Shown in pieces: positions 31,212 to 45,621 of a stretch of 64,000 nucleotides of DNA. The translations under genes and the position numbers were made by a program. The stretch lies in sequence record MH791411.1; one strand, given 5' to 3'. Positions within the stretch are counted from its first letter, which is position 1; the number at the start of each line of letters is the position of its first letter. The notes beneath the pieces are model-generated. The model saw only the letters and a program-made list of their open reading frames with translations, had not been told where the DNA came from and searched no databases.

Positions 31212-31622
31212 CTAATCGTGCCATTTAATAGGATACTCCGTTCCATTTATTGTATAAGATATAATCCATCCGTAATGAATAGGATGATTTTTGTCTGAAA
31301 CAGGAATAAAATATAAAGATGTACTGGGGTTATAACTGAATAAATCGTTGTTACCAATTGTAAAATGTGATAACTCAATCTTCCTTGTACCTGTACTTGG
31401 ACGAAGAACATTCTTAACACCGAAGACTGTACCTTGATATTTCTCGGAAAATTCAAACAATGCATCTGCAATTAAATCACGAAACTCCGCATGTATGGTT
31501 TCAAAAAAATCTATATTACACGATGTTTTAATATCCTTGAACTCCTTATATAAAGAGCTTCTTGTATTCAAAAGAAATATTACTTTTTTAAGATCCTGAA
31601 CTATTTCTGGATTCATATTCAT
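31212..31622 (-). CDS. Hypothetical protein
   Basis: 136 aa ORF. Confidence 0.75.
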   Translation of the reverse strand: MNMNPEIVQDLKKVIFLLNTRSSLYKEFKDIKTSCNIDFFETIHAEFRDLIADALFEFSEKYQGTVFGVKNVLRPSTGTRKIELSHFTIGNNDLFSYNPSTSLYFIPVSDKNHPIHYGWIISYTINGTEYPIKWHD

Positions 31623-31872
31623 TTATCTCATTCTGTAACTTAAGCATCAAAATTTGCATATTAATTTTTTGTACAAGATGATTGAGAAATTTCTGTACTG
31701 TATCTTCTTGTTCTTTTGTACCAAGATAAAATAACATATTAAATTCAGATAATCTCAGAGCGAAATCTTCCTCTCCCCCTCGTAAACAAAAATCCCTGTA
31801 CTTTGAAGCATACAAATAAGCATCTATCTTTTTATACCTTTGGGTCTGCATTGTATCTCCTTTTTCATGCAC
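31588..31872 (-). CDS. Family B paralogue
   Basis: YLGTKEQE. Confidence 0.75.
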   Translation of the reverse strand: MHEKGDTMQTQRYKKIDAYLYASKYRDFCLRGGEEDFALRLSEFNMLFYLGTKEQEDTVQKFLNHLVQKINMQILMLKLQNEINEYESRNSSGS

Positions 31873-32036
31873 CTTATTAGATTATCAACGTATTGATCCT
31901 GTACTATTGTCCCTAGATAAAATGATACTTCGAACTCTGATAATTTTATATTGAAAGGATCTACATATACATCTTTAATAAACTCTTTGTACTTCAACAT
32001 ATATGCATTAGGTATATTCTTATATATCGATTTCAA
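31824..32036 (-). CDS. Family B paralogue
   Basis: YLGTIVQD. Confidence 0.75.
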   Translation of the reverse strand: MKSIYKNIPNAYMLKYKEFIKDVYVDPFNIKLSEFEVSFYLGTIVQDQYVDNLIRCMKKEIQCRPKGIKR

Positions 32037-32331
32037 TGATCCTCCCTGACATACCTTGTATTAGCTTATCATACATATCGAGCATCACTTTTTGAATACT
32101 AATTAATACTGGCATCGTGCAAATATCAATGTCGTATATTAAGCTGTACTGGAATAATTCCTCTTCCTGCATGTGTACTAAATTAGGTAAAAGATAATTG
32201 TCTGCCTCTTCATCCTGGTACTTGAAATGCATAACACCATCCTTTTTGTACAAAAGAATGTCAATATCACCTAACTCTTCTGCATAACCAAAAATACATA
32301 TACTCGATGTTTTTGCTATATTAAATTTCAT
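32020..32331 (-). CDS. Family A paralogue (short type)
   Basis: EEELFQYSLIY. Confidence 0.8.
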   Translation of the reverse strand: MKFNIAKTSSICIFGYAEELGDIDILLYKKDGVMHFKYQDEEADNYLLPNLVHMQEEELFQYSLIYDIDICTMPVLISIQKVMLDMYDKLIQGMSGRIIEIDI

Positions 32332-32340
32332 ATTCTTCTC

Positions 32341-32691
32341 TTATATGTAGAATTCACATACGCGTTGAACAAAATTCTTTGGAAGATGACAATGTGCAAT
32401 CATCTGCTTTTGTACTTCCTTCATGTCTTCGAATGTAAATCCTAAAGAATCATCATGTACTAACAAGTACTGAAACTCTTCTTCTTCAGAGATAGAACAT
32501 AAATTCGGTACTGAAATTGTTTTTGCTTTTCTTGCACCCAATTTCCAATGAAAAGAATTATTGCATTTTCTGTACTCAAATATCTTCAACCCAGAACCTG
32601 TATTAAAATCAGCTACTACAATGTAACATGAATTCTTACGTACAATACAATTGAACTTACGCATTATCTCCACCTCTCTCCGTCTGTACAA
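32341..32691 (-). CDS. Family A paralogue (short type)
   Basis: EEEEFQYLLV. Confidence 0.8.
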   Translation of the reverse strand: MYRRREVEIMRKFNCIVRKNSCYIVVADFNTGSGLKIFEYRKCNNSFHWKLGARKAKTISVPNLCSISEEEEFQYLLVHDDSLGFTFEDMKEVQKQMIAHCHLPKNFVQRVCEFYI

Positions 32692-32909
32692 GAGTACTGG
32701 TACGTTGTCGTTAGGGTAGGGACCATGTTGGTAATGGGCATATTATTAACAATAACGGTAACAGGCATAAGTATCGTCTCTACTCTACTCTGTCCTGTCC
32801 TTGTGCAATTCATCTTTTGCATTTCATCGGACTCCATGAAATACAATACAAATGGTGCAATCCCAAGAACAATACACAAGACGATAAGGAAATTTAAAAA
32901 ATTCAACAT
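32664..32909 (-). CDS. Small membrane-anchored protein
   Basis: Hydrophobic N-terminus FLNFLIVLCIVLGIAPFVLYF; Cys pair in soluble part; promoter TTGACA-17-TATAGT at 32964-69/32941-46. Confidence 0.7.
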   Translation of the reverse strand: MLNFLNFLIVLCIVLGIAPFVLYFMESDEMQKMNCTRTGQSRVETILMPVTVIVNNMPITNMVPTLTTTYQYSCTDGERWR

Positions 32910-32970
32910 AATTTTCTACCCTAATGATTAACGTACAGGTACTATATCAGTAATGAAAAGTACTGTCAAG

Positions 32971-33345
32971 CTAGTATTGCACTGTTCTAATGAAAGTACC
33001 TTTACTCATGGATTTAAGCTTATGAACCTCTTCCTGTATACCCTTGATTAACCCTAAAGGTATAGGTACATCATGTACTAAGCTGTACTGAAAGTATTCT
33101 TCTTCAGATAAAGTACTAACATCTGGAATACCAATTTTAGTTATATAATCTTGATGTGTTGACCAATAAATTATATCTTCAGTACTATTGTACTCCCCAT
33201 ATACTGAACAATATTGATGAATATCTTTCATGTATCCTTGAGCAATAAAGAACTTATCTACTGCATTACCAGCATTAATAGAATTCACTTCGATTGTCAC
33301 AGTACTTGAGCTTGTTTTTCCTTTACTATGCATATTAATCCCCAA
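32971..33345 (-). CDS. Family A paralogue (short type)
   Basis: EEEYFQYSLV. Confidence 0.8.
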   Translation of the reverse strand: MGINMHSKGKTSSSTVTIEVNSINAGNAVDKFFIAQGYMKDIHQYCSVYGEYNSTEDIIYWSTHQDYITKIGIPDVSTLSEEEYFQYSLVHDVPIPLGLIKGIQEEVHKLKSMSKGTFIRTVQY

Positions 33346-33521
33346 ATTAGATATCGAACACTATCAGCTTGATAGTTAGTTCCTACTGTGTGTTTTAATA
33401 TTAACTCATCTTTCAGTACTGAACATTCTGCATTAGATATAGGAAGAGAATTAATTCTTTGAATTTCTGGTCGCAAAATACCGCGAAGCTTGCGGTAATC
33501 TTCGTATGATAATATTTTCAT
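33297..33521 (-). CDS. Family B paralogue
   Basis: TVGTNYQA. Confidence 0.8.
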   Translation of the reverse strand: MKILSYEDYRKLRGILRPEIQRINSLPISNAECSVLKDELILKHTVGTNYQADSVRYLIWGLICIVKEKQAQVL

Positions 33522-33524
33522 TGT

Positions 33525-33866
33525 TTAGTACTCAACGATGTGTTCTTCATAACCATTAAACTCCGGTTTAGTTTCTTTCATTAGGACTACCATTTTATGT
33601 ACTAATGGCATAGGAAATTCTAAATCCCATACTAATGATTCTTGAAAGTATTCTTCTTCAGATAAAGTACTTAAATCTTTAATATCAACGTGCTTGTATA
33701 TTTTATTTTCGTAATTAAGAAATGATATATATAAATCATTAACATCAGAATCATAAGTAATTGTGAATGGCTTACCCTTGTAGTCCATTACATCTTTACA
33801 TAGACTGCATTTGATATATGTATGTTCTTCTGAACTGTATACATTGAGTTGTATATTAGTTTTCAT
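33525..33866 (-). CDS. Family A paralogue (short type)
   Basis: EEEYFQESLVW. Confidence 0.8.
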   Translation of the reverse strand: MKTNIQLNVYSSEEHTYIKCSLCKDVMDYKGKPFTITYDSDVNDLYISFLNYENKIYKHVDIKDLSTLSEEEYFQESLVWDLEFPMPLVHKMVVLMKETKPEFNGYEEHIVEY

Positions 33867-34140
33867 ATTTCTCTTTATTAGCTTGTTTAGATTGTGTGGT
33901 TTTATAGTGAATTAAATCTATTAATGTAATCAAGTACAACGTCAAATAGTACTCTTGTTGATCTGTACCTAATGATACAAAGAACTTGTGCTCATAGATT
34001 AAAACCTGTTTCTCATAACAAGAACACTTAATCCTATGTATAGGTTTCAGTAAATGTGAGTACTTATTAAATCTCATACCCATTTCTATTTCAGATAGTA
34101 CTTTCATATTAAACATGTACTCCATTAGCTGTAGCATCAC
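33856..34140 (-). CDS. Family B paralogue
   Basis: SLGTDQQE. Confidence 0.8.
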   Translation of the reverse strand: MMLQLMEYMFNMKVLSEIEMGMRFNKYSHLLKPIHRIKCSCYEKQVLIYEHKFFVSLGTDQQEYYLTLYLITLIDLIHYKTTQSKQANKEKYEN

Positions 34141-34330
34141 GTAAAGCTCTCAAATACTTCTGTACTGCTTGCTCTTGATGATCTGTACCTAAAAGTATAT
34201 ACATCCATAATTCACTGTAATGTACATCTTGTGTATAAGGGTTGTTGTAACTTTTTGATAATATAGCATCAAATTCAGATGCATGAACCCTTGCGAACTT
34301 AAGCATATCTTGTTGTGTTATGATTCTCAT
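34109..34330 (-). CDS. Family B paralogue
   Basis: LLGTDHQE. Confidence 0.8.
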   Translation of the reverse strand: MRIITQQDMLKFARVHASEFDAILSKSYNNPYTQDVHYSELWMYILLGTDHQEQAVQKYLRALRDATANGVHV

Positions 34331-34542
34331 ATCTTTTCCTGTACTATCTGCATAAGAATCTCTATGTGTGAATTAACAGTTCTCTCTTGATGCTGTGTTC
34401 CTAAGAGTGTCAGTACTATCATATCTGAACGCAAAAGATTTTTTTCAAGTTCACTTATATCAGTTCTTGAATCAAGTGCCATATATTTGTGATTATTCTT
34501 CCTGAATAGTGCCAAGTACTCTTGATTTGATATTTCCTTCAT
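34327..34542 (-). CDS. Family B paralogue
   Basis: LLGTQHQE. Confidence 0.8.
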   Translation of the reverse strand: MKEISNQEYLALFRKNNHKYMALDSRTDISELEKNLLRSDMIVLTLLGTQHQERTVNSHIEILMQIVQEKI

Positions 34543-34778
34543 AGTTTATCCCTGATGCCATTTAAAAGTGCTCTAATATGCTCCTGTACGAATTTGTACT
34601 GACTGTCTGTTCCTAGAGTGAGTAGTAATCTTAAATCTGAACTTTTGATATGATATTCTAAATCATTATTTGATTCTTGCATCAGTTTCTTAAAGGATGA
34701 GAAGTTTGCAGCCATTAGTTCAATGTATTCTGCTGTTCCTAGGGGTTTGTGTATTGGCTGTTTGTGCTGTCTGTGCAT
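34539..34778 (-). CDS. Family B paralogue
   Basis: TLGTDSQY. Confidence 0.8.
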   Translation of the reverse strand: MHRQHKQPIHKPLGTAEYIELMAANFSSFKKLMQESNNDLEYHIKSSDLRLLLTLGTDSQYKFVQEHIRALLNGIRDKL

Positions 34779-34990
34779 TTTAATTTTATTACCCTTTTGA
34801 GTGTATTAATGTAATTATACACATTGGCTTCTTGATAGTTTGTTCCTAGAGTAGCTTGAACGTAGATTTCATTTAACTTAATAATTTTATCAGTATCTGG
34901 AAGTTTTGATGTGTTAATGGCAAATAACTTCGAAAACAGTCCATTTATGATTGTTAGGTATTCTTCGTCGGTAATGATTCGCATTTGCAT
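34739..34990 (-). CDS. Family B paralogue
   Basis: TLGTNYQE. Confidence 0.8.
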   Translation of the reverse strand: MQMRIITDEEYLTIINGLFSKLFAINTSKLPDTDKIIKLNEIYVQATLGTNYQEANVYNYINTLKRVIKLKCTDSTNSQYTNP

Positions 34991-35196
34991 TGGATAAACC
35001 TTTTTAGTTCTTTGATGTAATCATTAATATTACATTCTTGATAGTTAGTCCCTAGGGTAGAATTAACATAGATTTCACTCATTAGAATATTTTTTTCTTC
35101 ATCAGGTAAATCTGTGGTCTTTGCTATATACAATTTTAGAATTAAACTACTTAATAGTTCGTGGTATTCACTTGGTGAAAGGATTTTCATTTGCAT
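34954..35196 (-). CDS. Family B paralogue
   Basis: TLGTNYQE. Confidence 0.8.
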   Translation of the reverse strand: MQMKILSPSEYHELLSSLILKLYIAKTTDLPDEEKNILMSEIYVNSTLGTNYQECNINDYIKELKRFIQCKCESLPTKNT

Positions 35197-35402
35197 GTTC
35201 TCAGTACAGATTCTTTAAGTTCATCGATGTAGTCCTCAACGAATTGCTCTTGGAAGTTAGTTCCAACATATAAAAGAACTCTTAAATCTGCTCTAAGTAA
35301 CTCTTTTTCATCCTCATCTATATCAGACAATGTTATGTTTAAGAATTTACTTGTATTAAAGATTAACAATTCTGTTTGTTCACTGTGGCTTAAAATTTTC
35401 AT
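35187..35402 (-). CDS. Family B paralogue
   Basis: YVGTNFQE. Confidence 0.8.
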   Translation of the reverse strand: MKILSHSEQTELLIFNTSKFLNITLSDIDEDEKELLRADLRVLLYVGTNFQEQFVEDYIDELKESVLRTCK

Positions 35403-35610
35403 AATCTCTTTTTGCTTTCCTCGACAGTAGGTACAAATACGATTCTTCGTATTGTGCTTGGAAGTTTGTGTTTAAGAGTCGAAACAACTTCTGTTCTGCT
35501 AGAACGAGTTGCTTATCTTCATAACAACGGTAGCGTATCAACTTTTTGTATTCGATGTTGATTACATCCATTACTATAAGCCCATGTTCATCATCTGTCA
35601 AGTGCTTCAT
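35380..35610 (-). CDS. Family B paralogue
   Basis: LLNTNFQA. Confidence 0.8.
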   Translation of the reverse strand: MKHLTDDEHGLIVMDVINIEYKKLIRYRCYEDKQLVLAEQKLFRLLNTNFQAQYEESYLYLLSRKAKRDYENFKPQ

Positions 35611-35848
35611 GCTTTTTTCTTTTCCTGATGTGTTTAGTTAAAAGGTATATTAGTTTTCTGATGTATTCTTCTTGATAGTTTGTTCCTAGGAGTGCCAGAA
35701 GTTTTGCTTCAACTAAAGCTAATTGACGTTCTTCAAATGTGTGTTCCAGTATGTACTTTGGGTTTGATTTTTTAGATATTGCACTATTAGTTTTCATTAC
35801 AATCTTATGATATTCATTAACTGTTAGGATTTTTAAATTCTTGAGCAT
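35591..35848 (-). CDS. Family B paralogue
   Basis: LLGTNYQE. Confidence 0.8.
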   Translation of the reverse strand: MLKNLKILTVNEYHKIVMKTNSAISKKSNPKYILEHTFEERQLALVEAKLLALLGTNYQEEYIRKLIYLLTKHIRKRKKHEALDR

Positions 35849-36074
35849 GTACCTTTTCCTTTATAGAGAATTTAAGATATCGAAGCATACTTTCAATGTA
35901 ATACTCTTGTCTGTCAGTGCCAAGAAAGTACATGAGTTGAATGTATAAAACTTCTGCACTCCTTTCGGCATGTGACTTGTTTGTGTCGTTTGGAAGTTGA
36001 TTTGTAAGTTTTCTGGATTTAATTAGTCGTTCTTTTAACTCATCGTCTGTTAAGTATTTCATTTCATTTTGCAT
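35817..36074 (-). CDS. Family B paralogue
   Basis: FLGTDRQE. Confidence 0.8.
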   Translation of the reverse strand: MQNEMKYLTDDELKERLIKSRKLTNQLPNDTNKSHAERSAEVLYIQLMYFLGTDRQEYYIESMLRYLKFSIKEKVHAQEFKNPNS

Positions 36075-36294
36075 TTACTTTTTCCTTAATACTCATTACA
36101 AGATGTTCAATCATATTTTGAACCATAAATTCTTGTTTATCAGTTCCAAGAACGTATGGTAGCTTCTGAAACAATACATTCGCAGACATTTCATATATTG
36201 ATTGATTTGGAACGAACTTAAGAGTAATGTTATTGGCTTTTAACATCTTCTCTTGAAATTCTTCATTCGTTAAGTATATCATTTCACTTTGCAT
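36064..36294 (-). CDS. Family B paralogue
   Basis: VLGTDKQE. Confidence 0.8.
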   Translation of the reverse strand: MQSEMIYLTNEEFQEKMLKANNITLKFVPNQSIYEMSANVLFQKLPYVLGTDKQEFMVQNMIEHLVMSIKEKVNAK

Positions 36295-36520
36295 TTACTT
36301 TTTCCATAATAGTAATTTTGAGATATTTAATTATACGTTCAATGTGATACTCTTGCCTATCAGTTCCAAGAATGTATGGTAATCTTTGGAATAAAACTTC
36401 TGCACTCCTTTCCGCTGGGGTTTGGTTTGGGTTGTGTGGAAGATATTTTGTAAGTTTTTTGGATTTATCTAGTCTTTCTGTTAACTCATCATGTGTTAAG
36501 TATATCATTTCATTTTGCAT
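36284..36520 (-). CDS. Family B paralogue
   Basis: ILGTDRQE. Confidence 0.8.
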   Translation of the reverse strand: MQNEMIYLTHDELTERLDKSKKLTKYLPHNPNQTPAERSAEVLFQRLPYILGTDRQEYHIERIIKYLKITIMEKVNAK

Positions 36521-36756
36521 TTAATGTTCCTTACGTAAATTGTCTGGATTAAACAATCAATCCAAGTTTGAATATATTGGTTTTGATACTGTGTGCCTAA
36601 GAGACTCTGCATTTTAAACTCTGCTTCAAGTTCATATCTCTTTTCTATAGAAAAGCTCAAATGACCATATTCTTTATCGTATCTTCTCAGTGCTTCCCCA
36701 ATTCTATCAAATCTTTCTGCTAATCTGATGTTATTCACAATATTCATCGCATTCAT
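36505..36756 (-). CDS. Family B paralogue
   Basis: LLGTQYQN. Confidence 0.8.
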   Translation of the reverse strand: MNAMNIVNNIRLAERFDRIGEALRRYDKEYGHLSFSIEKRYELEAEFKMQSLLGTQYQNQYIQTWIDCLIQTIYVRNIKCKMK

Positions 36757-37031
36757 CGATCAGTACACCTCAGTGGTTGGGTCATTTGATGAAAGTACAG
36801 CTTACCTCTGATTTCCAGTAGTAACTCAGCAATTAAGCGATTTACTTCTGGCTCTTGATAGTTTGTTCCTAAGAATACACCCATCTTTAACTCACGCATC
36901 ATAATCATTTTCTTACTGTGTTGAATTTCTGGGTTGTGATAGATTGTATTACGTTTGTGCGTAATTTTTGTCATACGCTCGGTATATTCATCTTTACTTA
37001 AATTGATCATTTGCATGTTCATCAACCTCAC
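36753..37031 (-). CDS. Family B paralogue
   Basis: FLGTNYQE. Confidence 0.8.
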   Translation of the reverse strand: MRLMNMQMINLSKDEYTERMTKITHKRNTIYHNPEIQHSKKMIMMRELKMGVFLGTNYQEPEVNRLIAELLLEIRGKLYFHQMTQPLRCTDR

Positions 37032-37242
37032 ATTTATTTTCGATACAAATCATGAGTTCTCTAAGATAGTTTTTTACCTTACCTGCCTGATAGTTCGTCC
37101 CCAGGAAGTTGCATAACTCTGCTTCTATCATTTTGATTCTTCTGTTATCAGGTTTCAATTTTTTGTTATTGAAGATTTGAATCCTTATATCCCTTGATGC
37201 ATTTAAACGTTTTTGATATTCATGGAAAGATAAATTAATCAT
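36994..37242 (-). CDS. Family B paralogue
   Basis: FLGTNYQA. Confidence 0.8.
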   Translation of the reverse strand: MINLSFHEYQKRLNASRDIRIQIFNNKKLKPDNRRIKMIEAELCNFLGTNYQAGKVKNYLRELMICIENKCEVDEHANDQFK

Positions 37243-37457
37243 TTACTTTGTATCTCTCTCTTGAGGGCATCAATTAACAACAGTACAGCATTCTCTTGAT
37301 AGTTTGTTCCTAAGACTGAAAGCATCTTAATCTCATTTACTACGATCAACTTCTTTGAGCGTTCAATAATGTTACTATTATAAACGGCGTTACGTGCTGG
37401 ATAAGTTTTTGCAAGACGTTCATAATATTCATCTTTACTTAAATTAATCATTTGCAT
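37239..37457 (-). CDS. Family B paralogue
   Basis: VLGTNYQE. Confidence 0.8.
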   Translation of the reverse strand: MQMINLSKDEYYERLAKTYPARNAVYNSNIIERSKKLIVVNEIKMLSVLGTNYQENAVLLLIDALKREIQSK

Positions 37458-37666
37458 TTACTTTTGACCTCCTTGACTAATGCATCAACCCACATGTCTA
37501 TATACATTTGTTGATAGTTTGTCCCTATGAGTGCCCCTGCATAGAGTTCAGCTATCAATGCATGTTTTAGGTTGGCAGGGATGCTCTTATCAGATTGAAT
37601 CTTTACTCTTCTGTTGGCACATGTTTTCAGGAGTCTGATGTATTCAAAGCCTTGTAATTTTCTCAT
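37448..37666 (-). CDS. Family B paralogue
   Basis: LIGTNYQQ. Confidence 0.8.
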   Translation of the reverse strand: MRKLQGFEYIRLLKTCANRRVKIQSDKSIPANLKHALIAELYAGALIGTNYQQMYIDMWVDALVKEVKSKCK

Positions 37667-37878
37667 TCTTTTGATATCACCTTGTTACGTAAGGCACTTA
37701 ACAATACGTCAGTGTAGATGTTTTGATAGTTTGTTCCTACGAATACACCCAACTTCATTTCAGCTATTATAACACATTTGTCCTCTTGTGCAATAGACTT
37801 GTCTAAAGAAATACTAACAACTTTCCTTCTTATAGCTTGTAACCTCCAATGATACTGAAACTCATTTAGGGTTATCAT
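37663..37878 (-). CDS. Family B paralogue
   Basis: FVGTNYQN. Confidence 0.8.
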   Translation of the reverse strand: MITLNEFQYHWRLQAIRRKVVSISLDKSIAQEDKCVIIAEMKLGVFVGTNYQNIYTDVLLSALRNKVISKE

Positions 37879-38113
37879 TCTCTCGCCTCCATATCTCGGT
37901 TCTAATGTGTTGACATTGTGCTTCGATGAACATATCTATTGATTTGGCAATTGCTTTTTTATCAGTGCCTGTCATCAGTACAAGCATCTCGGCCTCACAG
38001 TGAAGTAAACGCATGATATCATAGGGTAATATTCCAGATACCGTGTCATAGTGTTTCTGTGCCAGTGTCTGTAATAGTTTACAATACATTTTGTGATTTA
38101 GTCTTTGTCGCAT
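37862..38113 (-). CDS. Family B paralogue (divergent)
   Basis: MTGTDKKA. Confidence 0.7.
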   Translation of the reverse strand: MRQRLNHKMYCKLLQTLAQKHYDTVSGILPYDIMRLLHCEAEMLVLMTGTDKKAIAKSIDMFIEAQCQHIRTEIWRRENDNPK

Positions 38114-38370
38114 TGTCTATTCCATTCTTTTTTGGCCTTGATGGTTTTATATTGGATTTGGTTTCTTAATGCTGATAAGTATCGTTGAATGAACAGATCT
38201 TGATAGTTTGTTCCAATGAATTTCATAAGATAAAGTTCACCGTTGATAACATCCACTTCAGGTGCACCATATAAGGCATTGTTTTTTCTAAGGGCATGGA
38301 TTAAAGAGAATAGGGCAGTTTGATACTCAACTCCTGATAAAGTCTTCATGTTTTGTGAGCCAATAATCAT
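38098..38370 (-). CDS. Family B paralogue
   Basis: FIGTNYQD. Confidence 0.8.
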   Translation of the reverse strand: MIIGSQNMKTLSGVEYQTALFSLIHALRKNNALYGAPEVDVINGELYLMKFIGTNYQDLFIQRYLSALRNQIQYKTIKAKKEWNRQCDKD

Positions 38371-38590
38371 CTAGTTTATCCTGTATAACATTCATTAATT
38401 GTTCGACATATTCTGTGCAAAACTTATCTTGATATTGAGTCCCCATAAAGTACAGCAACCATAGCTCATTAACTTTAGCTCGCATTTGGTTCCATGTAAG
38501 GCTGGGGTCATCGTAGACTATCCTTGCTATAGGGGTTAGTTTACGGACTATAGTTTCATATTCATCTAGTGTTAAGTGTTTCATTTGCAT
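38327..38590 (-). CDS. Family B paralogue
   Basis: FMGTQYQD. Confidence 0.8.
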   Translation of the reverse strand: MQMKHLTLDEYETIVRKLTPIARIVYDDPSLTWNQMRAKVNELWLLYFMGTQYQDKFCTEYVEQLMNVIQDKLDDYWLTKHEDFIRS

Positions 38591-38799
38591 TTGTCCCTTA
38601 TTAAATCAGTGAGGGCAACTATGTGTGCAACAACATACTCTTCCTGAAAGTTCGTCCCCAGTACAGCCATCATGCGTATATCGGTGGTGTTTATTCTGTG
38701 TTCCCTTACACATAAACCTTCTGTGTGAGGAAGTGTAAAATATTTGTTTATTGCAGCAACGATAATTTTATTCTTCTCGTAATTACTTAAATGTTTCAT
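38581..38799 (-). CDS. Family B paralogue
   Basis: VLGTNFQE. Confidence 0.8.
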   Translation of the reverse strand: MKHLSNYEKNKIIVAAINKYFTLPHTEGLCVREHRINTTDIRMMAVLGTNFQEEYVVAHIVALTDLIRDKCK

Positions 38800-39008
38800 A
38801 GTTTGCTCTTAATGTATTTCTGGAGTGCAATTATATACTCATTCAAGAAGTGCTCCTGATAATCTGTGCCGAGGAATGCACCCAATAGTATATCATTTTC
38901 CAATACTAATGCTAAGTTTAAATCATCAGTCTCTTCATATACTATGAGAATTTCAAGTTGTCTGGCAGCGACGCGTTCGGTATATAGATTTGAGTTAATG
39001 CTATTCAT
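38796..39008 (-). CDS. Family B paralogue
   Basis: FLGTDYQE. Confidence 0.8.
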   Translation of the reverse strand: MNSINSNLYTERVAARQLEILIVYEETDDLNLALVLENDILLGAFLGTDYQEHFLNEYIIALQKYIKSKL

Positions 39009-39217
39009 AGTTTACTCTTAATGTAATTCTGGAGTGCAATTAAGTATTCCCCTACATAATACACCTGAAAGTCTGTATCCAAAAATGCACCCATAAGTAA
39101 ATCTTTTTCTAATACCCTTGATAAGTTAAGGTCTGCATTTGAATTGTATATAATTAAGATTTTATTCTGGACAGAAACAAAACGTATCTTATATTCTTCT
39201 GGTGTTAAAAAAATCAT
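39005..39217 (-). CDS. Family B paralogue
   Basis: FLDTDFQV. Confidence 0.8.
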   Translation of the reverse strand: MIFLTPEEYKIRFVSVQNKILIIYNSNADLNLSRVLEKDLLMGAFLDTDFQVYYVGEYLIALQNYIKSKL

Positions 39218-39423
39218 AGTTTACTCTTAATATCTTCTATTAAAAAATGAATCCAATCATCAACATACTCTTCCTGATGGTTTGTGTTCAGTACAGCCAA
39301 CATGCGGATCTCTGCTCTTGCAACTTGGATTTCAGTTTTAGAAAGGTCTTTGCTGATATCAAACATTAAGTCCATGTATTTCAAGATAAGACCGAATGAT
39401 TGGGTTCGTGTTATAGTTTTCAT
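39214..39423 (-). CDS. Family B paralogue
   Basis: VLNTNHQE. Confidence 0.8.
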   Translation of the reverse strand: MKTITRTQSFGLILKYMDLMFDISKDLSKTEIQVARAEIRMLAVLNTNHQEEYVDDWIHFLIEDIKSKL

Positions 39424-39620
39424 TGTTTCCTCGTGGACAATATTTCATTTTTCAATGCATCCATATATTGAATCACCCATCTTCCCTGATAGCTTGTACC
39501 CAATGTAATCAAAAGGTATAACTCAATTCGTTCTAAGTTTGTGTCTGTGTTATAAATCTTTACCATGTTTTTACGTAACAGTTCTTGATAATCTTCTTTA
39601 TTTAAAATACGCATTTTCAT
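39420..39620 (-). CDS. Family B paralogue
   Basis: TLGTSYQG. Confidence 0.8.
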   Translation of the reverse strand: MKMRILNKEDYQELLRKNMVKIYNTDTNLERIELYLLITLGTSYQGRWVIQYMDALKNEILSTRKQ

Positions 39621-39814
39621 AGTCTACCTTTTATGTCCCTTCGTAATTCTTGTAAGTATAGTTCGATATACTTTTCTTGATAGTTAGTTCCTATGAAAAG
39701 TTTCATAACCAATTCACGCTTATATGCAATACCACGGATATGTGACATATGTAAGATATATGCCATGTTGGATATGAGTGTGTGGTTGTGCTCTTCTTGA
39801 GTTAAAATACGCAT
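39617..39814 (-). CDS. Family B paralogue (first gene of array)
   Basis: FIGTNYQE; TTGACT-16-TATTAT promoter just upstream (~39844-39872). Confidence 0.8.
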   Translation of the reverse strand: MRILTQEEHNHTLISNMAYILHMSHIRGIAYKRELVMKLFIGTNYQEKYIELYLQELRRDIKGRL

Positions 39815-39967
39815 AGGGACTCCATTAAAAATAATATCAATCCAATAATATACGATTCATATAAAAAGTCAATAACATTTTATAAGTAATACCCCTTTAT
39901 CGAAGTCGCTAAGGTTACCCGCCCTTTAGCCCCCTACGCATTTTGCCATAGTCCAATCCCTTTTTAT

Positions 39968-40039
39968 TCATAAAAGTCAAGGGATTACCTATGCATTTTT
40001 TTAACGCTGAAGTTTAAAAATGCCTTGACTTTTTTATGA
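39968..40039. repeat. Long imperfect inverted repeat at compositional boundary
   Basis: TCATAAAAGTCAAGG..GCATTTTT..AAAAATGC-CTTGACTTTTTTATGA. Confidence 0.75.
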
Positions 40040-40063
40040 TTCAGTACTAAATCCTTTTACGCA

Positions 40064-40273
40064 TTAATCCTTCGTTACGCTTACGATTATCTGTGTATCC
40101 CCATAGTCCTGCCATACTTCCACGCCAGCCGTCGCCTTGGTTAGTCGTGCTGTCATCTGCTTAATGGTCTTAGGCTTTAGTGGAACCTGTTGCAGTACTG
40201 TACGCATAGCACTATCGACGTTATCATGTACGCCTGCAATAGTGCCTAGAACGCTATATACTGTATAGATCAT
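40064..40273 (-). CDS. Early hypothetical protein
   Basis: AGGAG SD. Confidence 0.75.
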   Translation of the reverse strand: MIYTVYSVLGTIAGVHDNVDSAMRTVLQQVPLKPKTIKQMTARLTKATAGVEVWQDYGDTQIIVSVTKD

Positions 40274-40341
40274 GTGTATGTACTCCTGATATAGTTAAGG
40301 CCGCTAGAGAGCGGCCTATGATGTTTGATGATGTGTAACGC

Positions 40342-40743
40342 TTACAGTCCTAAGATAGTGCGTGCTTCGTTACGTTCCGTACACAGCTGCATGATGTGAG
40401 CAAGTAAGTCCTTGCTAATGTATCCGGTGTTCATAGCTTCACGAATAGATACATCATAAGCACCGAACCCAGTGCGAACGATACGCACATCATTCAGGTT
40501 AGTATTATAGATACCGCCGAGATCAACGGCTTCGAATACTACATCAACAGAATATTCATTGTTGCCATCGTGGAAGTTTTCCAGTGCAATAGTATTGGAA
40601 ACCGCCCAACGTTTGCAGTTTCCAATGATGCGGCACTGTTCCGGTTGGATAGTGCCATTACTTACAGCGTACTCCAGTGCATCTTTACCAAAAGTCCGAG
40701 CCAGTACTAAAACGTCAGCGAAGGAAGTGATTGAGAAGGTCAT
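40342..40743 (-). CDS. Early hypothetical protein
   Basis: Start reassigned to MTFSIT after AAGGAG. Confidence 0.8.
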   Translation of the reverse strand: MTFSITSFADVLVLARTFGKDALEYAVSNGTIQPEQCRIIGNCKRWAVSNTIALENFHDGNNEYSVDVVFEAVDLGGIYNTNLNDVRIVRTGFGAYDVSIREAMNTGYISKDLLAHIMQLCTERNEARTILGL

Positions 40744-40828
40744 GATAAAACTCCTTAATTTAGGAGGGAGAACCATTTCCCCCTCTCTATGTAAAACATT
40801 ATACATGAATCTAAGTACTATGCAAGTA

Positions 40829-41164
40829 CTATTTCATTTTAATACCTGGATTCAGGTAGCGGTGAGATCCATATTCTGGATCGGTTTCGGTCCAGTACTG
40901 TAAATCTATAGTACCTTTAGCGTTAATCTTATCTACCAGCTTATTCATCTTAGCGTATACTACATCAGCATCGATGCGTTTAAAGCCAGTGGCTTTAGTG
41001 AAGTAGTAGTGATTTGCTTCACTATCATTCAGGATGTACCGAGAACCGTCAGCCGTTTGTGCGACAATGAATGAGAATGATACTTTACGATCAAGGCCGT
41101 CGCAGTATACAGATGAATCATTGGTACGGATGAAAGCTTTAACGATAGCGATTGAAGTAGTCAT
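40829..41164 (-). CDS. Conserved-type phage early protein
   Basis: C-terminal IDLQYWTETDPEYGS resembles widespread phage early ORFs. Confidence 0.75.
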   Translation of the reverse strand: MTTSIAIVKAFIRTNDSSVYCDGLDRKVSFSFIVAQTADGSRYILNDSEANHYYFTKATGFKRIDADVVYAKMNKLVDKINAKGTIDLQYWTETDPEYGSHRYLNPGIKMK

Positions 41165-41325
41165 TTTGAATCTCCTAACTTTGTGGGCCGTCGCACCATT
41201 GCCGCCCTACGAGATACATTATTGCAGTACTGATATACTTTGTCAATACTTTTTTATTAATAGTTTTAGTTCCACCAGCAGATAGTTACTCACCGTTATT
41301 AACTATATATTTTGGATACACTTAT

Positions 41326-41392
41326 GCACCCTGTGGGCTAGTTTTTGTCTATGCGTATATAATAGCAAAGGGACTGACCTGAGTCAATCCCT
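41326..41392 (-). promoter_or_regulatory. Terminator/promoter/RCCC-hairpin module, copy 1 (others at 44078-44150, 47353-47420, 51358-51430)
   Basis: AAAGGGA-TTGAC-TCMG-GTCAG-TCCCTTT stem contains -35; TATTAT -10 17 bp downstream; then AGCCCACAGGGTGC. Confidence 0.85.
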
Positions 41393-41409
41393 TTTTTTAT
41401 TCTTTTTTG

Positions 41410-41610
41410 TTAGATGATTCTCCAATCATCAACGATCATGGTAAGATACCGAACCAGTGATTCGAGTGATTCGTGTTCTCGATAGTCTGACGCACCGCCA
41501 GCGGTACAAGTACAGCCGATTAAGCCGTTTTGCAATTCCTTAATCTGTACATCGATAAGGTTGGCTTTAGCTTCTTTCAGTACTTCAACCAGGGCGATAG
41601 CGATAGACAT
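41410..41610 (-). CDS. Early hypothetical protein
   Basis: Own promoter cassette, GGAG SD. Confidence 0.75.
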   Translation of the reverse strand: MSIAIALVEVLKEAKANLIDVQIKELQNGLIGCTCTAGGASDYREHESLESLVRYLTMIVDDWRII

Positions 41611-41700
41611 AATGTTTTACTCCAAACTATTGGCGGGAGAACTATTCCCCCGCTCTATGTAAAACATTATACATTACTGGTTAGTACTGTCAAATAGTTT

Positions 41701-41958
41701 TTATGAAATATCTTCGATGTAGTCGGCCCATTTCATTTTTTCAGTACTGTCAATGGCTACCGGATTATTTGGATCAAACCATTCACCATTACCGCAATAC
41801 ATACCAACGGCTACGGTTTTATAGCCATCCTGGGCCGTACACCACGACATTGCACGATAGATATGGCCTTTAACTGGTTGTAGTACTGGTAACGTTTTAT
41901 GGTCTTCTACGTAGGCCATCGCTTGATGATTTACCCGATATTGTGTGAACTGTTCCAT
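41701..41958 (-). CDS. Early hypothetical protein
   Basis: 85 aa, SD. Confidence 0.75.
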   Translation of the reverse strand: MEQFTQYRVNHQAMAYVEDHKTLPVLQPVKGHIYRAMSWCTAQDGYKTVAVGMYCGNGEWFDPNNPVAIDSTEKMKWADYIEDIS

Positions 41959-42034
41959 TATGTTTCCCCTTGTAGTTAGTAAAGTTATTACATCAGTACT
42001 ATCAAGCTATGTCAATAGTACTGAAATAAAACTT

Positions 42035-42259
42035 TTAGATTAGATTATTGAGGCCGTCAATGGTAGACTCACTTTCTTCTTTCTCCCATTGTCGGTAGTA
42101 CTTCCATGCTTCATGATAGGTGGCGATTAGTTCATCTTTTTGATCCTGGTTACATGCCAGTACTGAATCACGGTGAGCGGTGTTATAGATAGAATCGAAT
42201 GATTTCTTCTCTTCTGCCAGGTTAGCTACTTCCCGCATCAGTTCATCAAAGTTAGCCAT
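42035..42259 (-). CDS. Early hypothetical protein
   Basis: AGGAG SD, own promoter. Confidence 0.8.
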   Translation of the reverse strand: MANFDELMREVANLAEEKKSFDSIYNTAHRDSVLACNQDQKDELIATYHEAWKYYRQWEKEESESTIDGLNNLI

Positions 42260-42326
42260 TTTATTACTCCTTTTAGTGGGGGAGGATATCTCCCCCTATG
42301 CAAAACATTATACTTTGTTTTAGTTA

Positions 42327-42590
42327 TTATGCAAGTACTTTTTTCATATAAACATTAAATTCTACACCGCCGTAACCTTCCACGATGATATGTTTTGCGT
42401 TATCACGTTTGCACATAGTGAAACCATCGTTTACGTGTTTTGCATTTTCCAGGGCGACATCACCGATAGCGGCACATACGGCACTAATAACAGTATTCCG
42501 CAAAGTACTGGTATCATTGGCGGTCATAGTAGTTTGCAGTACTACGTTGTCGTATACGTGTGCATTGATAGTGATTTCGATAGTGTTCAT
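42327..42590 (-). CDS. Early hypothetical protein
   Basis: Start reassigned to MNTIEI. Confidence 0.75.
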   Translation of the reverse strand: MNTIEITINAHVYDNVVLQTTMTANDTSTLRNTVISAVCAAIGDVALENAKHVNDGFTMCKRDNAKHIIVEGYGGVEFNVYMKKVLA

Positions 42591-42677
42591 GGTGTATCTC
42601 CTGGACTTGAGGGGAAACCATTTCCCCCTCTCGATATAAAACATTATACGTTAATCTAACTACAATGCAAGTACTTT

Positions 42678-42869
42678 TTAAATTTTATTTCCGATATAGT
42701 CCGGCATGTTCTTTTCAGTCATACGCTTTGCTAATGTCTGCATATGGCTTATAGCGTTCAAGGTGTCTTCCTCCAGGGATGAATCGAGATAATCAGGATC
42801 ATTCTTCACCTTGCAATGATTATGATAGCGTAGTACTGCCAGTACTTTTTTAACTTCTTCTACTGTCAT
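42678..42869 (-). CDS. Early hypothetical protein
   Basis: 63 aa, coupled to upstream gene. Confidence 0.7.
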   Translation of the reverse strand: MTVEEVKKVLAVLRYHNHCKVKNDPDYLDSSLEEDTLNAISHMQTLAKRMTEKNMPDYIGNKI

Positions 42870-43138
42870 AATAAGTACCCCACTTCGTTAGCTTTCAGGT
42901 TAGTATCAATCATCAGTGGATTTTTGTAGTTCACAAAACGAGTAGTTTTCTCGATAGCGAATCCCATATAATCCAGCTTACTAACAGTACATTCATTCTT
43001 AAAAACTTCTTTCGCTGCATCGATGGCTGATTGCATGGATAACCGACCATCTAAATTAATGTTTCCAAATGATCCACCAGCAGAAGTAGGATTACCGTTC
43101 ATATCTTTAATGATCATAGTAGCGGAGTAGCTGGACAT
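42866..43138 (-). CDS. Early hypothetical protein
   Basis: LDGRLSMQSAID; contains a Chi site at 43074. Confidence 0.75.
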   Translation of the reverse strand: MSSYSATMIIKDMNGNPTSAGGSFGNINLDGRLSMQSAIDAAKEVFKNECTVSKLDYMGFAIEKTTRFVNYKNPLMIDTNLKANEVGYLL

Positions 43139-43227
43139 AATTTTGTTTCCTTTTATTGGTGTGGGGAGAACTATTCTCCCCTTGATGTAAACTATTATAC
43201 AGTACTAAAATACTTTGTCAAATACTT

Positions 43228-43635
43228 TTATTCGCCCATATAGATTAGATTATCATCGCCTACATAGGGATCGCAAACGTTGATTTCTTCACAGTACTTC
43301 GTGAATACATCGCCATAGTGACCTAAACCACGATCCCAAAAACCAGTTCCGTGACCTTCGCGGGTAAGGAACAGATCATGACCAGCTTGCTCATAACCGT
43401 AATCAATAAACATACCGCGAACTACTTCCAGATCATTACCGTGTTTCTCAATGAAGCGAGAACATGCAATCACCGCCGCTTGACGTGCTTCATCAGATAA
43501 CTCATAATCTTCCAGGTAATCGCCGTTATCATTATGTACAGTACTGAATTGCATAGCTTCAATGTAAGCTACAACCATTGCAGCATGATTTTTATCGTTA
43601 GTGATGTTCCGAGCGAGATTAGTAGTAGTAGACAT
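43228..43635 (-). CDS. Conserved-type phage protein (GHDxxLTRxGHGxGFWDR)
   Basis: AGHDLFLTREGHGTGFWDRG motif; function unknown to me. Confidence 0.8.
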   Translation of the reverse strand: MSTTTNLARNITNDKNHAAMVVAYIEAMQFSTVHNDNGDYLEDYELSDEARQAAVIACSRFIEKHGNDLEVVRGMFIDYGYEQAGHDLFLTREGHGTGFWDRGLGHYGDVFTKYCEEINVCDPYVGDDNLIYMGE

Positions 43636-43718
43636 GATTTTATTCCTTATTGTATTGGGGAGAACTATTCTCCCCTTGATGTAAACTATTATACAGTACT
43701 GATATACTTTGTCAATAC

Positions 43719-43940
43719 TTAATTACGTTTAAAATGATATGTGCCTTTATCATCCTGTACGCCCCATACTGATTTACCATCAACACCAGTGAAGCCGGAT
43801 TGTAATTCAATATGGAAACCATTATTATCAACTACAAAAACTTTTTTATTTTCATCCCGATAACATTGATATTCTGAATCAACATTAAAGGCCGCATCAT
43901 TCAGACGATTGGAAGCGTAAATGCAAGTCATTGTAGTCAT
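43719..43940 (-). CDS. Early hypothetical protein
   Basis: Start reassigned to MTTMTC. Confidence 0.7.
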   Translation of the reverse strand: MTTMTCIYASNRLNDAAFNVDSEYQCYRDENKKVFVVDNNGFHIELQSGFTGVDGKSVWGVQDDKGTYHFKRN

Positions 43941-44164
43941 GATTTTATTCCTTAATATACCAGGGAGAACCATTCCCCCTCTCGATATAAAACATTATAC
44001 TTGATTCTAAGTACAATGCAAGTACTTTTTTAAAAATAGTTTTCAGTACTGAATACTTATATAATAGATACACTTCCGCACCCTATGGGTCAGTGAGTTA
44101 TCTCTCAATGGATATATAATAGCAAAGGGACTGACCGGAGTCAATCCCTTTTTTTAATCTTTTT

Positions 44165-44749: not shown

Positions 44750-44780
44750 TGCATGTTCTCCTTGAGTTAATGAAACTATA

Positions 44781-45023: not shown

Positions 45024-45080
45024 TTTGTTTCCCCCGTGTTGGTATGTACATATAGTACTAAAACATTTGAGTACTGTCAA

Positions 45081-45299: not shown

Positions 45300-45352
45300 T
45301 TTGTTTCTCCCGTGTTGGTATGTGTACATAGTACTAAAACAATTGAGTACTG

Positions 45353-45607: not shown

Positions 45608-45621
45608 TTTGTTTGTCCTAT

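Follow-up and report, generated by a model that had tools for sequence, protein, structure and literature searches.

The window analysed here, a 64,000-nucleotide stretch of record MH791411.1, comes from Escherichia phage Ecwhy_1 (Asteriusvirus), a giant E. coli phage with a genome of ~354 kb. Between positions 33856 and 39814 it carries 27 contiguous minus-strand ORFs for small paralogous proteins, which we refer to as family B and on which we trained a profile HMM. The ORFs of the run score E-values of 1e-27 to 3e-19 against this HMM, which recovers five further ORFs in the window, at 19169, 19338, 31588, 31824 and 33297, and no others (Table 1). The best-scoring non-member reaches E = 0.14, leaving a clean gap in E-value below the 32 members. 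A six-frame scan of the window that ignored start codons found the same 32 copies and no fragments, remnants or decayed copies. A previous reading of the letters and ORFs (the sequence-only reading) had counted 32 paralogues, 27 of them uninterrupted, and had listed the same five outliers; HMM and six-frame scan bear out both the counts and the coordinates. Its assignment of the whole interval 31588–39814 to family B needs qualification: members do lie inside it, but so do four family A genes and an 81-aa ORF (32664–32909) with a hydrophobic N-terminal stretch, as judged from its translation. Family B proteins are 58–93 aa long, a value that varies with the start codon chosen.

Table 1. Positions in the window of the terminal repeat, promoter, array genes and outlying family B genes
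Feature	Position	Strand	Basis or remark
Direct terminal repeat, single copy in record	39912..61864	-	mapped from vB_Ec-M-J DTR; inner boundary ~39912, outer physical end ~61864
Sigma-70-like promoter (TTGACT, 16-nt spacer, TATTAT)	39845..39872	-	between DTR boundary and first array gene
Family B member 1, 65 aa, first gene of run	39617..39814	-	HMM
Family B member 2, 66 aa	39420..39620	-	HMM
Family B member 3, 69 aa; turn Gly to Asn	39214..39423	-	HMM
Family B member 4, 70 aa; turn Gly to Asp	39005..39217	-	HMM
Family B member 5, 70 aa	38796..39008	-	HMM
Family B member 6, 72 aa	38581..38799	-	HMM
Family B member 7, 87 aa	38327..38590	-	HMM
Family B member 8, 90 aa	38098..38370	-	HMM
Family B member 9, 83 aa; turn Gln to Lys and post-turn insertion	37862..38113	-	HMM
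Family B member 10, 71 aa	37663..37878	-	HMM
Family B member 11, 72 aa	37448..37666	-	HMM
Family B member 12, 72 aa	37239..37457	-	HMM
Family B member 13, 82 aa	36994..37242	-	HMM
Family B member 14, 87 aa from annotated ATG	36753..37016	-	HMM
Family B member 15, 83 aa	36505..36756	-	HMM
Family B member 16, 78 aa, recent triplet	36284..36520	-	HMM
Family B member 17, 76 aa, recent triplet	36064..36294	-	HMM
Family B member 18, 85 aa, recent triplet; 64% identity to member 16	35817..36074	-	HMM
Family B member 19, 85 aa	35591..35848	-	HMM
Family B member 20, 76 aa; turn Gly to Asn; no CDS in GenBank record MH791411.1	35380..35610	-	HMM
Family B member 21, 71 aa; sequence used for structure model	35187..35402	-	HMM
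Family B member 22, 78 aa; top profile match	34954..35190	-	HMM
Family B member 23, 83 aa	34739..34990	-	HMM
Family B member 24, 79 aa	34539..34778	-	HMM
Family B member 25, 71 aa	34327..34542	-	HMM
Family B member 26, 73 aa	34109..34330	-	HMM
Family B member 27, 93 aa, final gene of uninterrupted run	33856..34137	-	HMM
Family A gene, 113 aa; overlaps end of run, same operon	33525..33866	-	
Family B outlier, 74 aa, flanked by two family A genes	33297..33521	-	HMM, E 4.6e-10
Family A gene, 124 aa; probable operon end	32971..33345	-	
Family B outlier of a divergent subfamily that lacks the N-terminal segment; 58 aa (annotated ATG)	31824..32000	-	E 7.3e-9
Family B outlier of the 31824 subfamily; 87 aa (annotated ATG)	31588..31851	-	E 2.4e-7
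Family B outlier, 72 aa; turn Thr to Ser	19338..19556	-	HMM, E 1.2e-6
Family B outlier, 63 aa	19169..19360	-	HMM, E 1.6e-13

The 27 contiguous copies are the bulk of an operon of ~6.9 kb and 30 genes. As claimed earlier, stops and starts overlap, and they do so at each of the 26 junctions in the run. The overlap is a 4-nt ATGA at 11 of them, and taking an internal Met as the start would cut most of the longer overlaps to no more than 4 nt. In its intergenic gaps the operon has a single strong sigma-70-like site, upstream of the first array gene in the 98 bp that separate this gene from the inner end of the direct terminal repeat (DTR), and a GGAG ribosome-binding site is found upstream of the gene's ATG. 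Inside the run there is a single terminator-like site on the minus strand, with a weak 5-bp stem. A 61-bp gap containing a strong promoter-like site (32941–32969) follows the family A gene at the probable end of the operon.

Across 30.5–42.5 kb, promoter-like sites are not enriched (49 vs 60 expected), and at 42.5–62 kb, in the DTR, there are 107 where 64 ± 9 are expected, 11 of them on the coding strand and without a mismatch. The DTR, whose bounds in Ecwhy_1 we transferred from the annotated DTR of vB_Ec-M-J (1–21525), contains small genes, mostly with a sigma-70-like promoter upstream. That of fEgEco12, with gene annotations that include a kinase, a GNAT acetyltransferase, spackle and a DksA-like protein, is 20,993 bp long, as confirmed by restriction digests (PMC13070987), and RNA-seq of the related phage PA5oct places its DTR genes in the early class (PMC7318152).

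AlphaFold (AF2) very confidently predicts a four-helix bundle for member 21 (pLDDT 97, pTM 0.81), with helices at residues 6–15, 17–24, 30–44 and 51–70 and a beta-bridge joining residue 2 to the turn Thr. The conserved columns of the family either form the hydrophobic core, spaced at i, i+3/4 and i+7, or hold helix-capping or turn residues, and the other columns approach maximal diversity among paralogues (entropy 3.2–3.8 bits). This prediction, proposed as a check in the sequence-only reading, supports the idea put forward there of a constant small scaffold whose faces vary. The G-T-x-x-Q turn, called invariant, turned out to be near-invariant instead (Gly 29/32, Thr 31/32, Gln 31/32), and the N-terminal motif columns are conserved at 71% (Leu), 68% (Glu) and 61% (Tyr). 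Polar columns conserved across paralogues are two Glu, the turn Gln and a C-terminal Lys. Mean identity between paralogues is 24%, implying that the copies are old and have long been retained; neighbouring copies resemble each other a little more closely (30% vs 22%), which demonstrates tandem duplication. Hydropathy in 19-residue windows gave no membrane segments, and pI values run from 4.4 to 9.9 (median 8.8), about a third of the members being acidic.

The family is already catalogued as PHROG 4148: phrog_4148 picks up 31 of the 32 members (best E 4e-26), and phrog_28039, which covers the divergent subfamily, picks up 13. Neither a function nor a tandem array nor a link to a terminal repeat is given in the PHROG 4148 entry. 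For members from 121Q, UB, PBECO4 and slurp01, structure predictions are already available in BFVD. Searches of Pfam, NCBIfam and PADLOC gave no match; there was no similarity to PDB sequences, defence-related profiles or known anti-defence or defence proteins; and Foldseek found no counterpart of the model among solved structures (best E 1.7). Among 1.84 billion proteins there are only 102 cluster representatives of family B, and those traced belong to Asteriusvirus or RaK2-type phages, or to contigs whose small genes are packed in the same layout. Six other isolates each have an array of 26–29 intact contiguous members, with further arrays in contigs of E. coli assemblies; RaK2 and the metagenomic relatives have only 9–13 members each, dispersed. 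We read family B as an expansion, specific to this lineage, of a small four-helix protein that is soluble and cytoplasmic.

The helix–Gly turn–helix layout, together with the basic median pI, brings up a function in gene expression, which we consider distinctly unlikely: the proteins would bind nucleic acids or RNA polymerase/sigma and tune phage or host transcription or translation, the Gly-containing turn working like that of a helix-turn-helix (HTH) protein. The post-turn helix, however, is 20 residues long with core positions along its full length, the acidic third of the family fits poorly, no HTH or other DNA-binding Pfam profile is matched, and Foldseek matches to TetR-type regulators all have E >6. 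To our knowledge, thirty-two regulators in one operon would be without precedent. The circumstances that the array adjoins the early region and that Asteriusviruses encode their own sigma factor (PMC11895373) count in favour of such regulators.

Selection maintains intact family B copies. Pooled dN/dS among orthologues is 0.35 (153 pairs, 97% of them below 1), compared with 0.17 for DTR genes and 0.33 for non-B neighbours. Purifying selection on the G-T-x-x-Q core, on which the sequence-only reading had staked its claim, is present: non-synonymous/synonymous changes number 0/26 for Thr, 5/25 for Gly and 3/11 for Gln. By column, no significant excess of non-synonymous change was found anywhere among orthologues, the fastest-evolving, variable non-core columns reaching up to about the neutral rate, so an arms-race signature is absent at the level of point mutations. 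We assign a low probability to a duplication-prone locus filled with largely dispensable, weakly useful copies (for example, for dosage) under weak selection. Such a locus would account for a dN/dS twice that of the DTR genes, for the near-neutral exposed columns and for the tandem duplication seen in adjacent copies, but not for the strong constraint on core and turn columns, the age of the paralogues, the complete lack of frameshifted or truncated remnants among the 32 copies, or the long runs of intact ORFs, at 70–99% nucleotide identity, in every phage sampled.

Change between sister phages is visible at the level of cassettes, which vary from 44 to 100% identity against one and the same sister phage and sort into discrete allele classes (36 records). 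JNE01 is 96.0% identical to Ecwhy_1 over 10,955 bp, a block that includes the array promoter and extends to window position 39816, where the identity stops 2 nt before the first array start codon. The JNE01 array beyond has 20 members, 18 of them in unshared orthogroups, and only 2 orthogroups are common to both phages. The repertoire is largely the same in 8 of the 9 phages compared. Copies kept intact by selection, in a set that is almost entirely different in one or more sister phages, are what one would expect of genes for interaction with the host.

A hypervariable locus whose proteins have a conserved N-terminal segment before a variable body also recalls the T4-type internal-protein locus, and the family B proteins might by analogy be packaged and injected with the DNA. 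This we already disfavour as highly improbable: the N-terminus is integral to the predicted fold through its beta-bridge to the turn, and a sigma-70-type promoter and an early-region neighbourhood are unlike those of late head-assembly genes. The virion table of phAPEC6 (62 proteins) has no gp45x–gp50x entry and thus lists nothing from that phage's array (gp467c–gp489c), with the limit that small proteins readily escape virion mass spectrometry.

The reading that we favour, tentatively and at a little less than an even chance, is that family B is an early, co-translated repertoire of small putative binders aimed at host proteins. We infer the early timing, the translational coupling, the independent action of each binder and the host proteins as targets. 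Host RNA polymerase would start at the sigma-70-like promoter (39872–39845) soon after DNA entry, perhaps with additional read-through from the promoter-dense repeat, and coupling through overlapping stops and starts would make all members together. Each protein would act alone, its fixed parts being the hydrophobic core, the helix caps and the Gly-Thr turn, and those residues of helices 1, 2 and 4 that are exposed, and that differ between copies, would contact different host targets; defence proteins, or other host proteins taken over in infection, are candidates. The repertoire would change mainly by swapping of whole cassettes or the whole block rather than by point-wise positive selection. 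The case for a binder or anti-defence role is circumstantial, built on the adjoining promoter-dense repeat, the absence from the phAPEC6 virion table and the array's near-complete replacement in a sister phage.

The same repertoire might have other targets and serve competition between phages, by superinfection exclusion or by inhibition of co-infecting phages or satellites. All evidence for binders applies equally here, and among the annotated genes of the neighbouring DTR in fEgEco12 is a spackle-like superinfection gene. We nevertheless regard this as improbable, since family B resembles no known superinfection-exclusion protein and such proteins usually act at the envelope, whereas the hydropathy windows gave family B no membrane segment.

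The stability of the repertoire in 8 of the 9 phages is also compatible with conserved housekeeping, and the polar columns conserved in all paralogues could mark one shared partner, not many targets. Both observations are in keeping with an organisation that we think unlikely, in which the members would be common-partner adaptors or subunits of a hetero-oligomer, assembling with each other, with family A or with one host or phage hub. The conserved polar positions would then make the contacts, within one machine or coat rather than 32 independent binders. Coupling and a single operon imply co-expression, and family A genes are interleaved in the array operon; but the unshared members of the smaller JNE01 array and the few, dispersed copies of RaK2 and the metagenomic relatives should not be tolerated by a complex of fixed stoichiometry, and neither the wide pI spread nor a monomer model that is fully confident alone favours assembly. 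The suggestion in the sequence-only reading that family B proteins are partners of family A draws on nothing more than the shared operon, and the C-terminal extensions of the three natural B-domain fusions are not family A.

Family B can be compared with several known systems. Bacillus phage G has a lineage-specific expansion of ~35 zinc-ribbon proteins, which was termed unprecedented (Iyer et al. 2021, PMC7824862); that paper cites an Ecwhy_1 protein accession, and a term search of the main text did not turn up family B. In both cases a single small domain is present at ~30 copies in one jumbo phage, but family B is four-helix, lacks a metal site, belongs to a different phage group and has its copies side by side in a single operon whose translation is probably coupled.

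Long terminal repeats of other phages also carry genes for early functions or host takeover: the DTR genes of PA5oct (PMC7318152), the SPO1 terminal-redundancy host-takeover module and the T5 pre-early genes. Such genes are many, small, uncharacterised, located at the genome end and read by the host polymerase, a description that the Ecwhy_1 DTR fits. Unlike these three sets of repeat genes, the family B array lies just outside the repeat, has one promoter for ~30 genes rather than one per gene, and is a single paralogous family rather than a collection of unrelated genes. Clustered anti-defence loci of phages, such as anti-CRISPR or inhibitor islands and the contiguous non-essential regions of phiKZ (bioRxiv 10.1101/2025.11.23.690004), resemble family B in grouping small, fast-evolving, non-structural proteins within an accessory region that varies. 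Their genes, however, are unrelated to one another, whereas family B is one family, without resemblance to known inhibitors.

Terminal multigene families are also found in large eukaryotic DNA viruses, as in the asfarvirus MGFs, the poxvirus terminal families and the "genomic accordions". Viruses, hosts and proteins are unrelated to ours, so the likeness is conceptual only, and the family B copies are old and diverged rather than recently amplified. In these viruses, as in family B, tandem paralogues near a genome terminus vary in number and content between strains whose flanks are nearly identical.

Escherichia phage Ecwhy_1 (MH791411.1; 354,537 bp), a member of genus Asteriusvirus, matches the window at 100% identity, with window positions equal to record positions minus 248,000. 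In the ORF listing, small minus-strand ORFs follow one another without a break between 39814 and 33856: these 27 genes form the contiguous array of family B, the tiny paralogues that share a G-T-x-x-Q turn. When a profile made from the 27 run ORFs was searched against the window's 371 ORFs with 40 aa or more, the seeds scored against it with E-values of 1e-27 to 3e-19, and five outliers beyond the run (19169, 33297, 31824, 31588 and 19338) scored 1.6e-13 to 1.2e-6. The best non-member had E = 0.14, so the search recovers exactly the five outliers named in the sequence-only reading. A stop-to-stop six-frame scan of the window returned the same 32 segments and no extra family-B fragments, from which we conclude that the window holds no decayed copy. 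The turn, which that reading had called invariant, is more accurately near-invariant: its Gly is found in 29, its Thr in 31 and its Gln in 31 of the 32 members, and one Leu in the last helix is kept in 30. About 5% of the genome record's annotated features (32 of 590) belong to this one tiny family. The intact member at 35380-35610 has no CDS in MH791411.1, and in the records of phages UB and PBECO4 many members likewise lack annotation with their ORFs intact.

Family B is already known in the sense that it is catalogued, as PHROG 4148 and as BFVD models. The PHROG 4148 profile is matched by 31 of the 32 members (best E 4.4e-26), with residues 1-63 of member 1, the array's first gene, aligning to profile positions 1-69 of 74; phrog_28039 is matched by 13, including the divergent pair at 31588 and 31824. 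Both entries are catalogued as of unknown function. Among 1.84 billion cluster representatives, a profile search found 102 proteins at E <= 0.001, all but three of them 52-96 aa long, and those of the distant relatives that were traced belong to Klebsiella phages RaK2 and K64-1 or to contigs of uncultured origin whose small genes are packed in the same way. At the DNA level the array matched 36 phage records, all of them Escherichia or Salmonella jumbo phages of genus Asteriusvirus. Outside these giant enterobacterial phages the family is hardly found.

The paralogues are old: their pairwise identity averages 24% (range 11-64%). The only DNA-level repeats within the array are the codons of the conserved turn and the N-terminus. 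Adjacent copies are 30% identical, versus 22% for copies at least four positions apart, and one triplet (35817-36520) is recent. For 153 reciprocal-best orthologue pairs, the pooled dN/dS was 0.35 (median 0.35) and 97% of pairs fell below 1; the corresponding values were 0.17 for genes of the direct terminal repeat (DTR), which adjoins member 1, and 0.33 for non-B neighbours in the variable region. Within the turn, non-synonymous versus synonymous changes numbered 0 versus 26 at Thr, 5 versus 25 at Gly and 3 versus 11 at Gln. The core hydrophobic columns had pN/pS values of 0.09-0.3, and values of about 1 were reached in columns along helices 1, 2 and 4. This pattern suggests a constrained scaffold with exposed positions free to vary. 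A per-column test, which is crude, pairwise and not phylogenetically independent, placed no column significantly above neutrality and does not demonstrate diversifying selection. Selection keeps every copy intact. A view of the copies as weakly selected duplicates has the near-neutral helix columns on its side and the conserved turn and core against it, and we consider it quite improbable.

For a 71-aa member (35187-35402), AlphaFold2, using an alignment of 109 sequences, predicted helices at residues 6-15, 17-24, 30-44 and 51-70 and a beta-bridge from residue 2 to the turn Thr, with a pLDDT of 97 and a pTM of 0.81. This model accounts structurally for the motifs picked out in the sequence-only reading. 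Helix 1 is predicted to have the N-terminal Ser/Thr as its N-cap and the Glu that lies three residues further on at N3, a combination that is the classical "capping box" of helices. Helix 3 is predicted to be closed by the turn Gly, and the turn to be held to the N-terminal strand by its Thr; for the near-invariant Gln the model offers no explanation. No member contains a membrane-type hydrophobic stretch.

Neither sequence nor structure searches connected this predicted fold to a characterised protein. Helix-turn-helix DNA-binding proteins were matched on neither count: no Pfam family reached its cut-off and NCBIfam returned nothing for any of the 32 members, and when the model (pLDDT 97) was compared with the PDB by Foldseek, every match had E > 1 (the best had E = 1.7, and the TetR-type matches had E > 6 and TM < 0.5). 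The same search against the predicted viral structures of BFVD returned only family B's own members. We found no likeness to characterised defence or anti-defence proteins in the PDB by Foldseek, in a PDB sequence profile search (a single match, E = 6.9), or in PADLOC, where scanning all 32 members gave only three single-member matches (E 0.0016 to 0.0047). A DNA-mimic anti-restriction role of the Ocr/ArdA type was also rejected, since the members are not acidic throughout (pI 4.4 to 9.9, median 8.8). That family B consists of regulators of gene expression seems unlikely to us: the mostly basic pI speaks for it, and the lack of any helix-turn-helix match against it.

The array lies next to the DTR. 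In the related phage fEgEco12 the DTR is 20,993 bp long, as restriction digests confirm (PMC13070987), and the record of another relative, vB_Ec-M-J, annotates one at 1-21525. Mapping from vB_Ec-M-J places the DTR of the window between ~61864 (physical end) and ~39912 (inner boundary). Because the inner boundary maps there, the array's first gene (39617..39814) begins 98 bp inside the unique region, and the array thus lies outside the DTR, unlike terminal-repeat early or host-takeover modules. Those 98 bp contain a sigma-70-like promoter site (TTGACT, 16-nt spacer, TATTAT; 39872-39845) and a GGAG ribosome-binding site. Within the run all 26 gene junctions overlap, the sole minus-strand terminator-like site is a weak 5-bp stem, and promoter-like sites are not enriched in the array region (49 versus 60 expected). 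Beyond the run come a gene of family A (another paralogous family), which overlaps it by 11 nt, then a family-B outlier 3 nt further on and, again overlapping, a second family-A gene; after these, a gap of 61 bp holds a new promoter-like site, a strong one (32969-32941; TTGACA, 17-nt spacer, TATAGT, extended -10 TG). Since the run continues through these three genes before the gap, we regard the whole as one operon of ~30 genes and 6.9 kb. The table lists the ORF that opens the next transcription unit along with other features discussed here.

Features in the window and in related sequences (window coordinates unless a contig is named).
Feature	Sequence	Coordinates	Strand	Remarks
Family A, 14 paralogues, 103-193 aa	window	9084-10228, 15425-18026, 23585-24710, 29670-30328, 32020-33866	minus	
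Third paralogous family, seven genes, 146-164 aa	window	14546-23575	minus	
81-aa ORF	window	32664-32909	minus	PHROG 8826, no known function; hydrophobic near the N-terminus; opens next transcription unit
28-nt hairpin (12-bp stem), four DTR copies	window	41367-41394, 44124-44151, 47394-47421, 51404-51431	minus	
Nine tiny tandem paralogues, 61-77 aa	window	62167-63940	minus	
Same tandem array in ~350-kb contigs	L003-L006			E. coli assemblies, GCA_036253055.1 and others
269-aa fusion	L007	2625-3434		B domain plus orphan C-terminal part, ~200 aa
121-aa B-domain fusion, RaK2	L012	14980-15366		also K64-1

In PA5oct, a relative of this phage group, RNA-seq assigns the DTR genes to the early class (PMC7318152). 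As literature searches turned up no Asteriusvirus transcriptome, we infer rather than observe early expression of the array. The DTR itself, counted over window 42500-62000, is strongly enriched in promoter-like sites of the sigma-70 consensus, 107 versus 64 +/- 9 expected, with 11 perfect TTGACA/TATAAT matches on its coding strand. One recurrent class of DTR site consists of TTGCAA, a 16-nt spacer and TATAAT. The repeated 28-nt hairpin carries a -35 hexamer (TTGACT) within its stem and a -10 hexamer (TATTAT) after it, and it resembles a terminator-like element and a promoter joined in a single unit between early genes.

The only rival that is clearly disfavoured is that the members are packaged internal (injected) proteins of the T4 type, which we regard as very unlikely indeed. 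The array of phage phAPEC6 corresponds to gp467c-gp489c, and the phAPEC6 virion table of 62 proteins contains no gp45x-gp50x, with the proviso that small proteins can escape mass spectrometry. The model also speaks against packaging: cleavage of an N-terminal capsid-targeting peptide is argued against because the modelled N-terminus is part of the fold, through the beta-bridge to the turn Thr.

Arrays of 26-29 contiguous intact members are found in vB_Ec-M-J, UB, PBECO4, phAPEC6, ph0011 and Salmonella phage SD-15_S21, and also in 350-kb contigs from E. coli assemblies; depositors left several members of these arrays unannotated. Since this tandem array is present in the contigs, they appear to be Asteriusvirus genomes that are nearly complete. 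Measured against one and the same sister phage, individual members are anywhere from 44% to 100% identical, and one cassette exists across the genus in discrete allele classes (~97%, 77%, 51% and absent). Variation is mainly by cassette. At >= 60% identity, 258 members from nine phages fall into 56 orthogroups; of these, 19 occur in eight phages and 21 in a single phage.

The most abrupt change is seen in phage JNE01, in which a stretch of 10,955 bp of the repeat, ending at window 39816, is collinear with Ecwhy_1 at 96.0% identity. Homology breaks two bases before the array's first start codon, leaving the promoter and ribosome-binding site on the conserved side. Past the break there are just short matches of 68-83% identity, and the JNE01 array, with 20 members, has only 2 orthogroups in common with that of Ecwhy_1. 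In RaK2 and two metagenomic relatives the members number 9-13 and are scattered in small groups, which implies that the 27-gene run is an expansion specific to Asteriusvirus; we see the array as small accessory proteins of a large virus, expanded in one lineage. A role in inter-phage competition is one that we doubt strongly.

Family A, some of whose genes are interleaved in the family-B operon, was modelled as a possible partner of family B. It has an invariant Phe-Gln pair within an acidic motif, and AlphaFold (12 sequences, pLDDT 84) predicted an alpha/beta fold in which a beta-sheet is accompanied by two helices. This model had no PDB match below E 0.01, and the family's PHROGs (13866, 15629 and 34636) are all catalogued as of unknown function. 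Three natural fusions contain a B domain: one of 269 aa (in UB and the E. coli-assembly contigs) and two of 121-122 aa (in RaK2/K64-1 and in a metagenome). Neither Pfam nor any informative PHROG was matched by the C-terminal parts of these fusions, and the part from the 269-aa protein, searched against 5.8 billion proteins, found only that protein itself. These parts are not family A, so we rejected the fusions as a "Rosetta stone" link; they gave neither a functional clue nor a connection between the families. That the paralogues bind a common partner or form a hetero-oligomeric assembly, to which the interleaved family-A genes lend some support and the fusions none, strikes us as fairly unlikely.

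The RaK2/K64-1 fusion sits at a syntenic transition from promoter-spaced to tightly packed genes, and RaK2 and K64-1 have 8 other dispersed family-B members beside it. The nine tiny tandem paralogues, at the right-hand extreme of the unique genome, lie just past the outer end of the DTR (~61864); they were rejected as distant family B (hhalign probability 0.2%). The metagenomic relatives L013 and L015 have runs similar to that of the third paralogous family, with genes of 160-200 aa downstream of small-gene arrays.

The reading that best fits these observations, which we hold with a little less than even confidence, is that family B comprises early, co-translated, small soluble binders with a fixed core and copy-specific surfaces, carried as an exchangeable block at the edge of the DTR. 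Given the position and the block replacement, host defence or takeover proteins are the most economical guess for their targets. A bolder version, which we find rather doubtful, is that the array is a combinatorial library: each paralogue would neutralise a different host immune or stress protein, using a previously undescribed four-helix scaffold, and the phage would re-equip itself through wholesale exchange of the block, with recombination at one fixed place, the first gene's promoter and start codon at the DTR edge.

If the members do inhibit host proteins, they would constitute a panel of ~56 or more natural small binders on a very stable 70-residue scaffold, and a compact entry to the host-takeover or counter-defence biology of this phage group, most of whose annotated genes are still listed as hypothetical proteins. 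If they are instead adaptors for a common partner, or regulators, the interest is more modest, and the family would still be among the largest single-family expansions described in phage. Between sister phages, homology stops exactly at the first start codon; accessory-gene exchange beside the DTR thus has a natural boundary there, which bears on how jumbo phage genomes diversify.

Our literature searches found no account of the array, the fold, the position at the DTR boundary or the block replacement, and no functional data. The main text of a jumbo-phage review, in which we found no mention of family B though an Ecwhy_1 protein accession is cited, describes as unprecedented the zinc-ribbon expansion of phage G, which has roughly 35 copies (PMC7824862). 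In RaK2, ~10% of gene products are paralogues (PMC3622015). In concept, although not by homology, there is a likeness to the terminal multigene families of large DNA viruses, in which tandem paralogues near a terminus vary in content by strain: here 27 tandem copies adjoin the DTR, and JNE01 shares only the two orthogroups despite its 96%-identical flank. If the library reading is true, the array would be to a bacterial virus what terminal multigene families are to large DNA viruses of eukaryotes.
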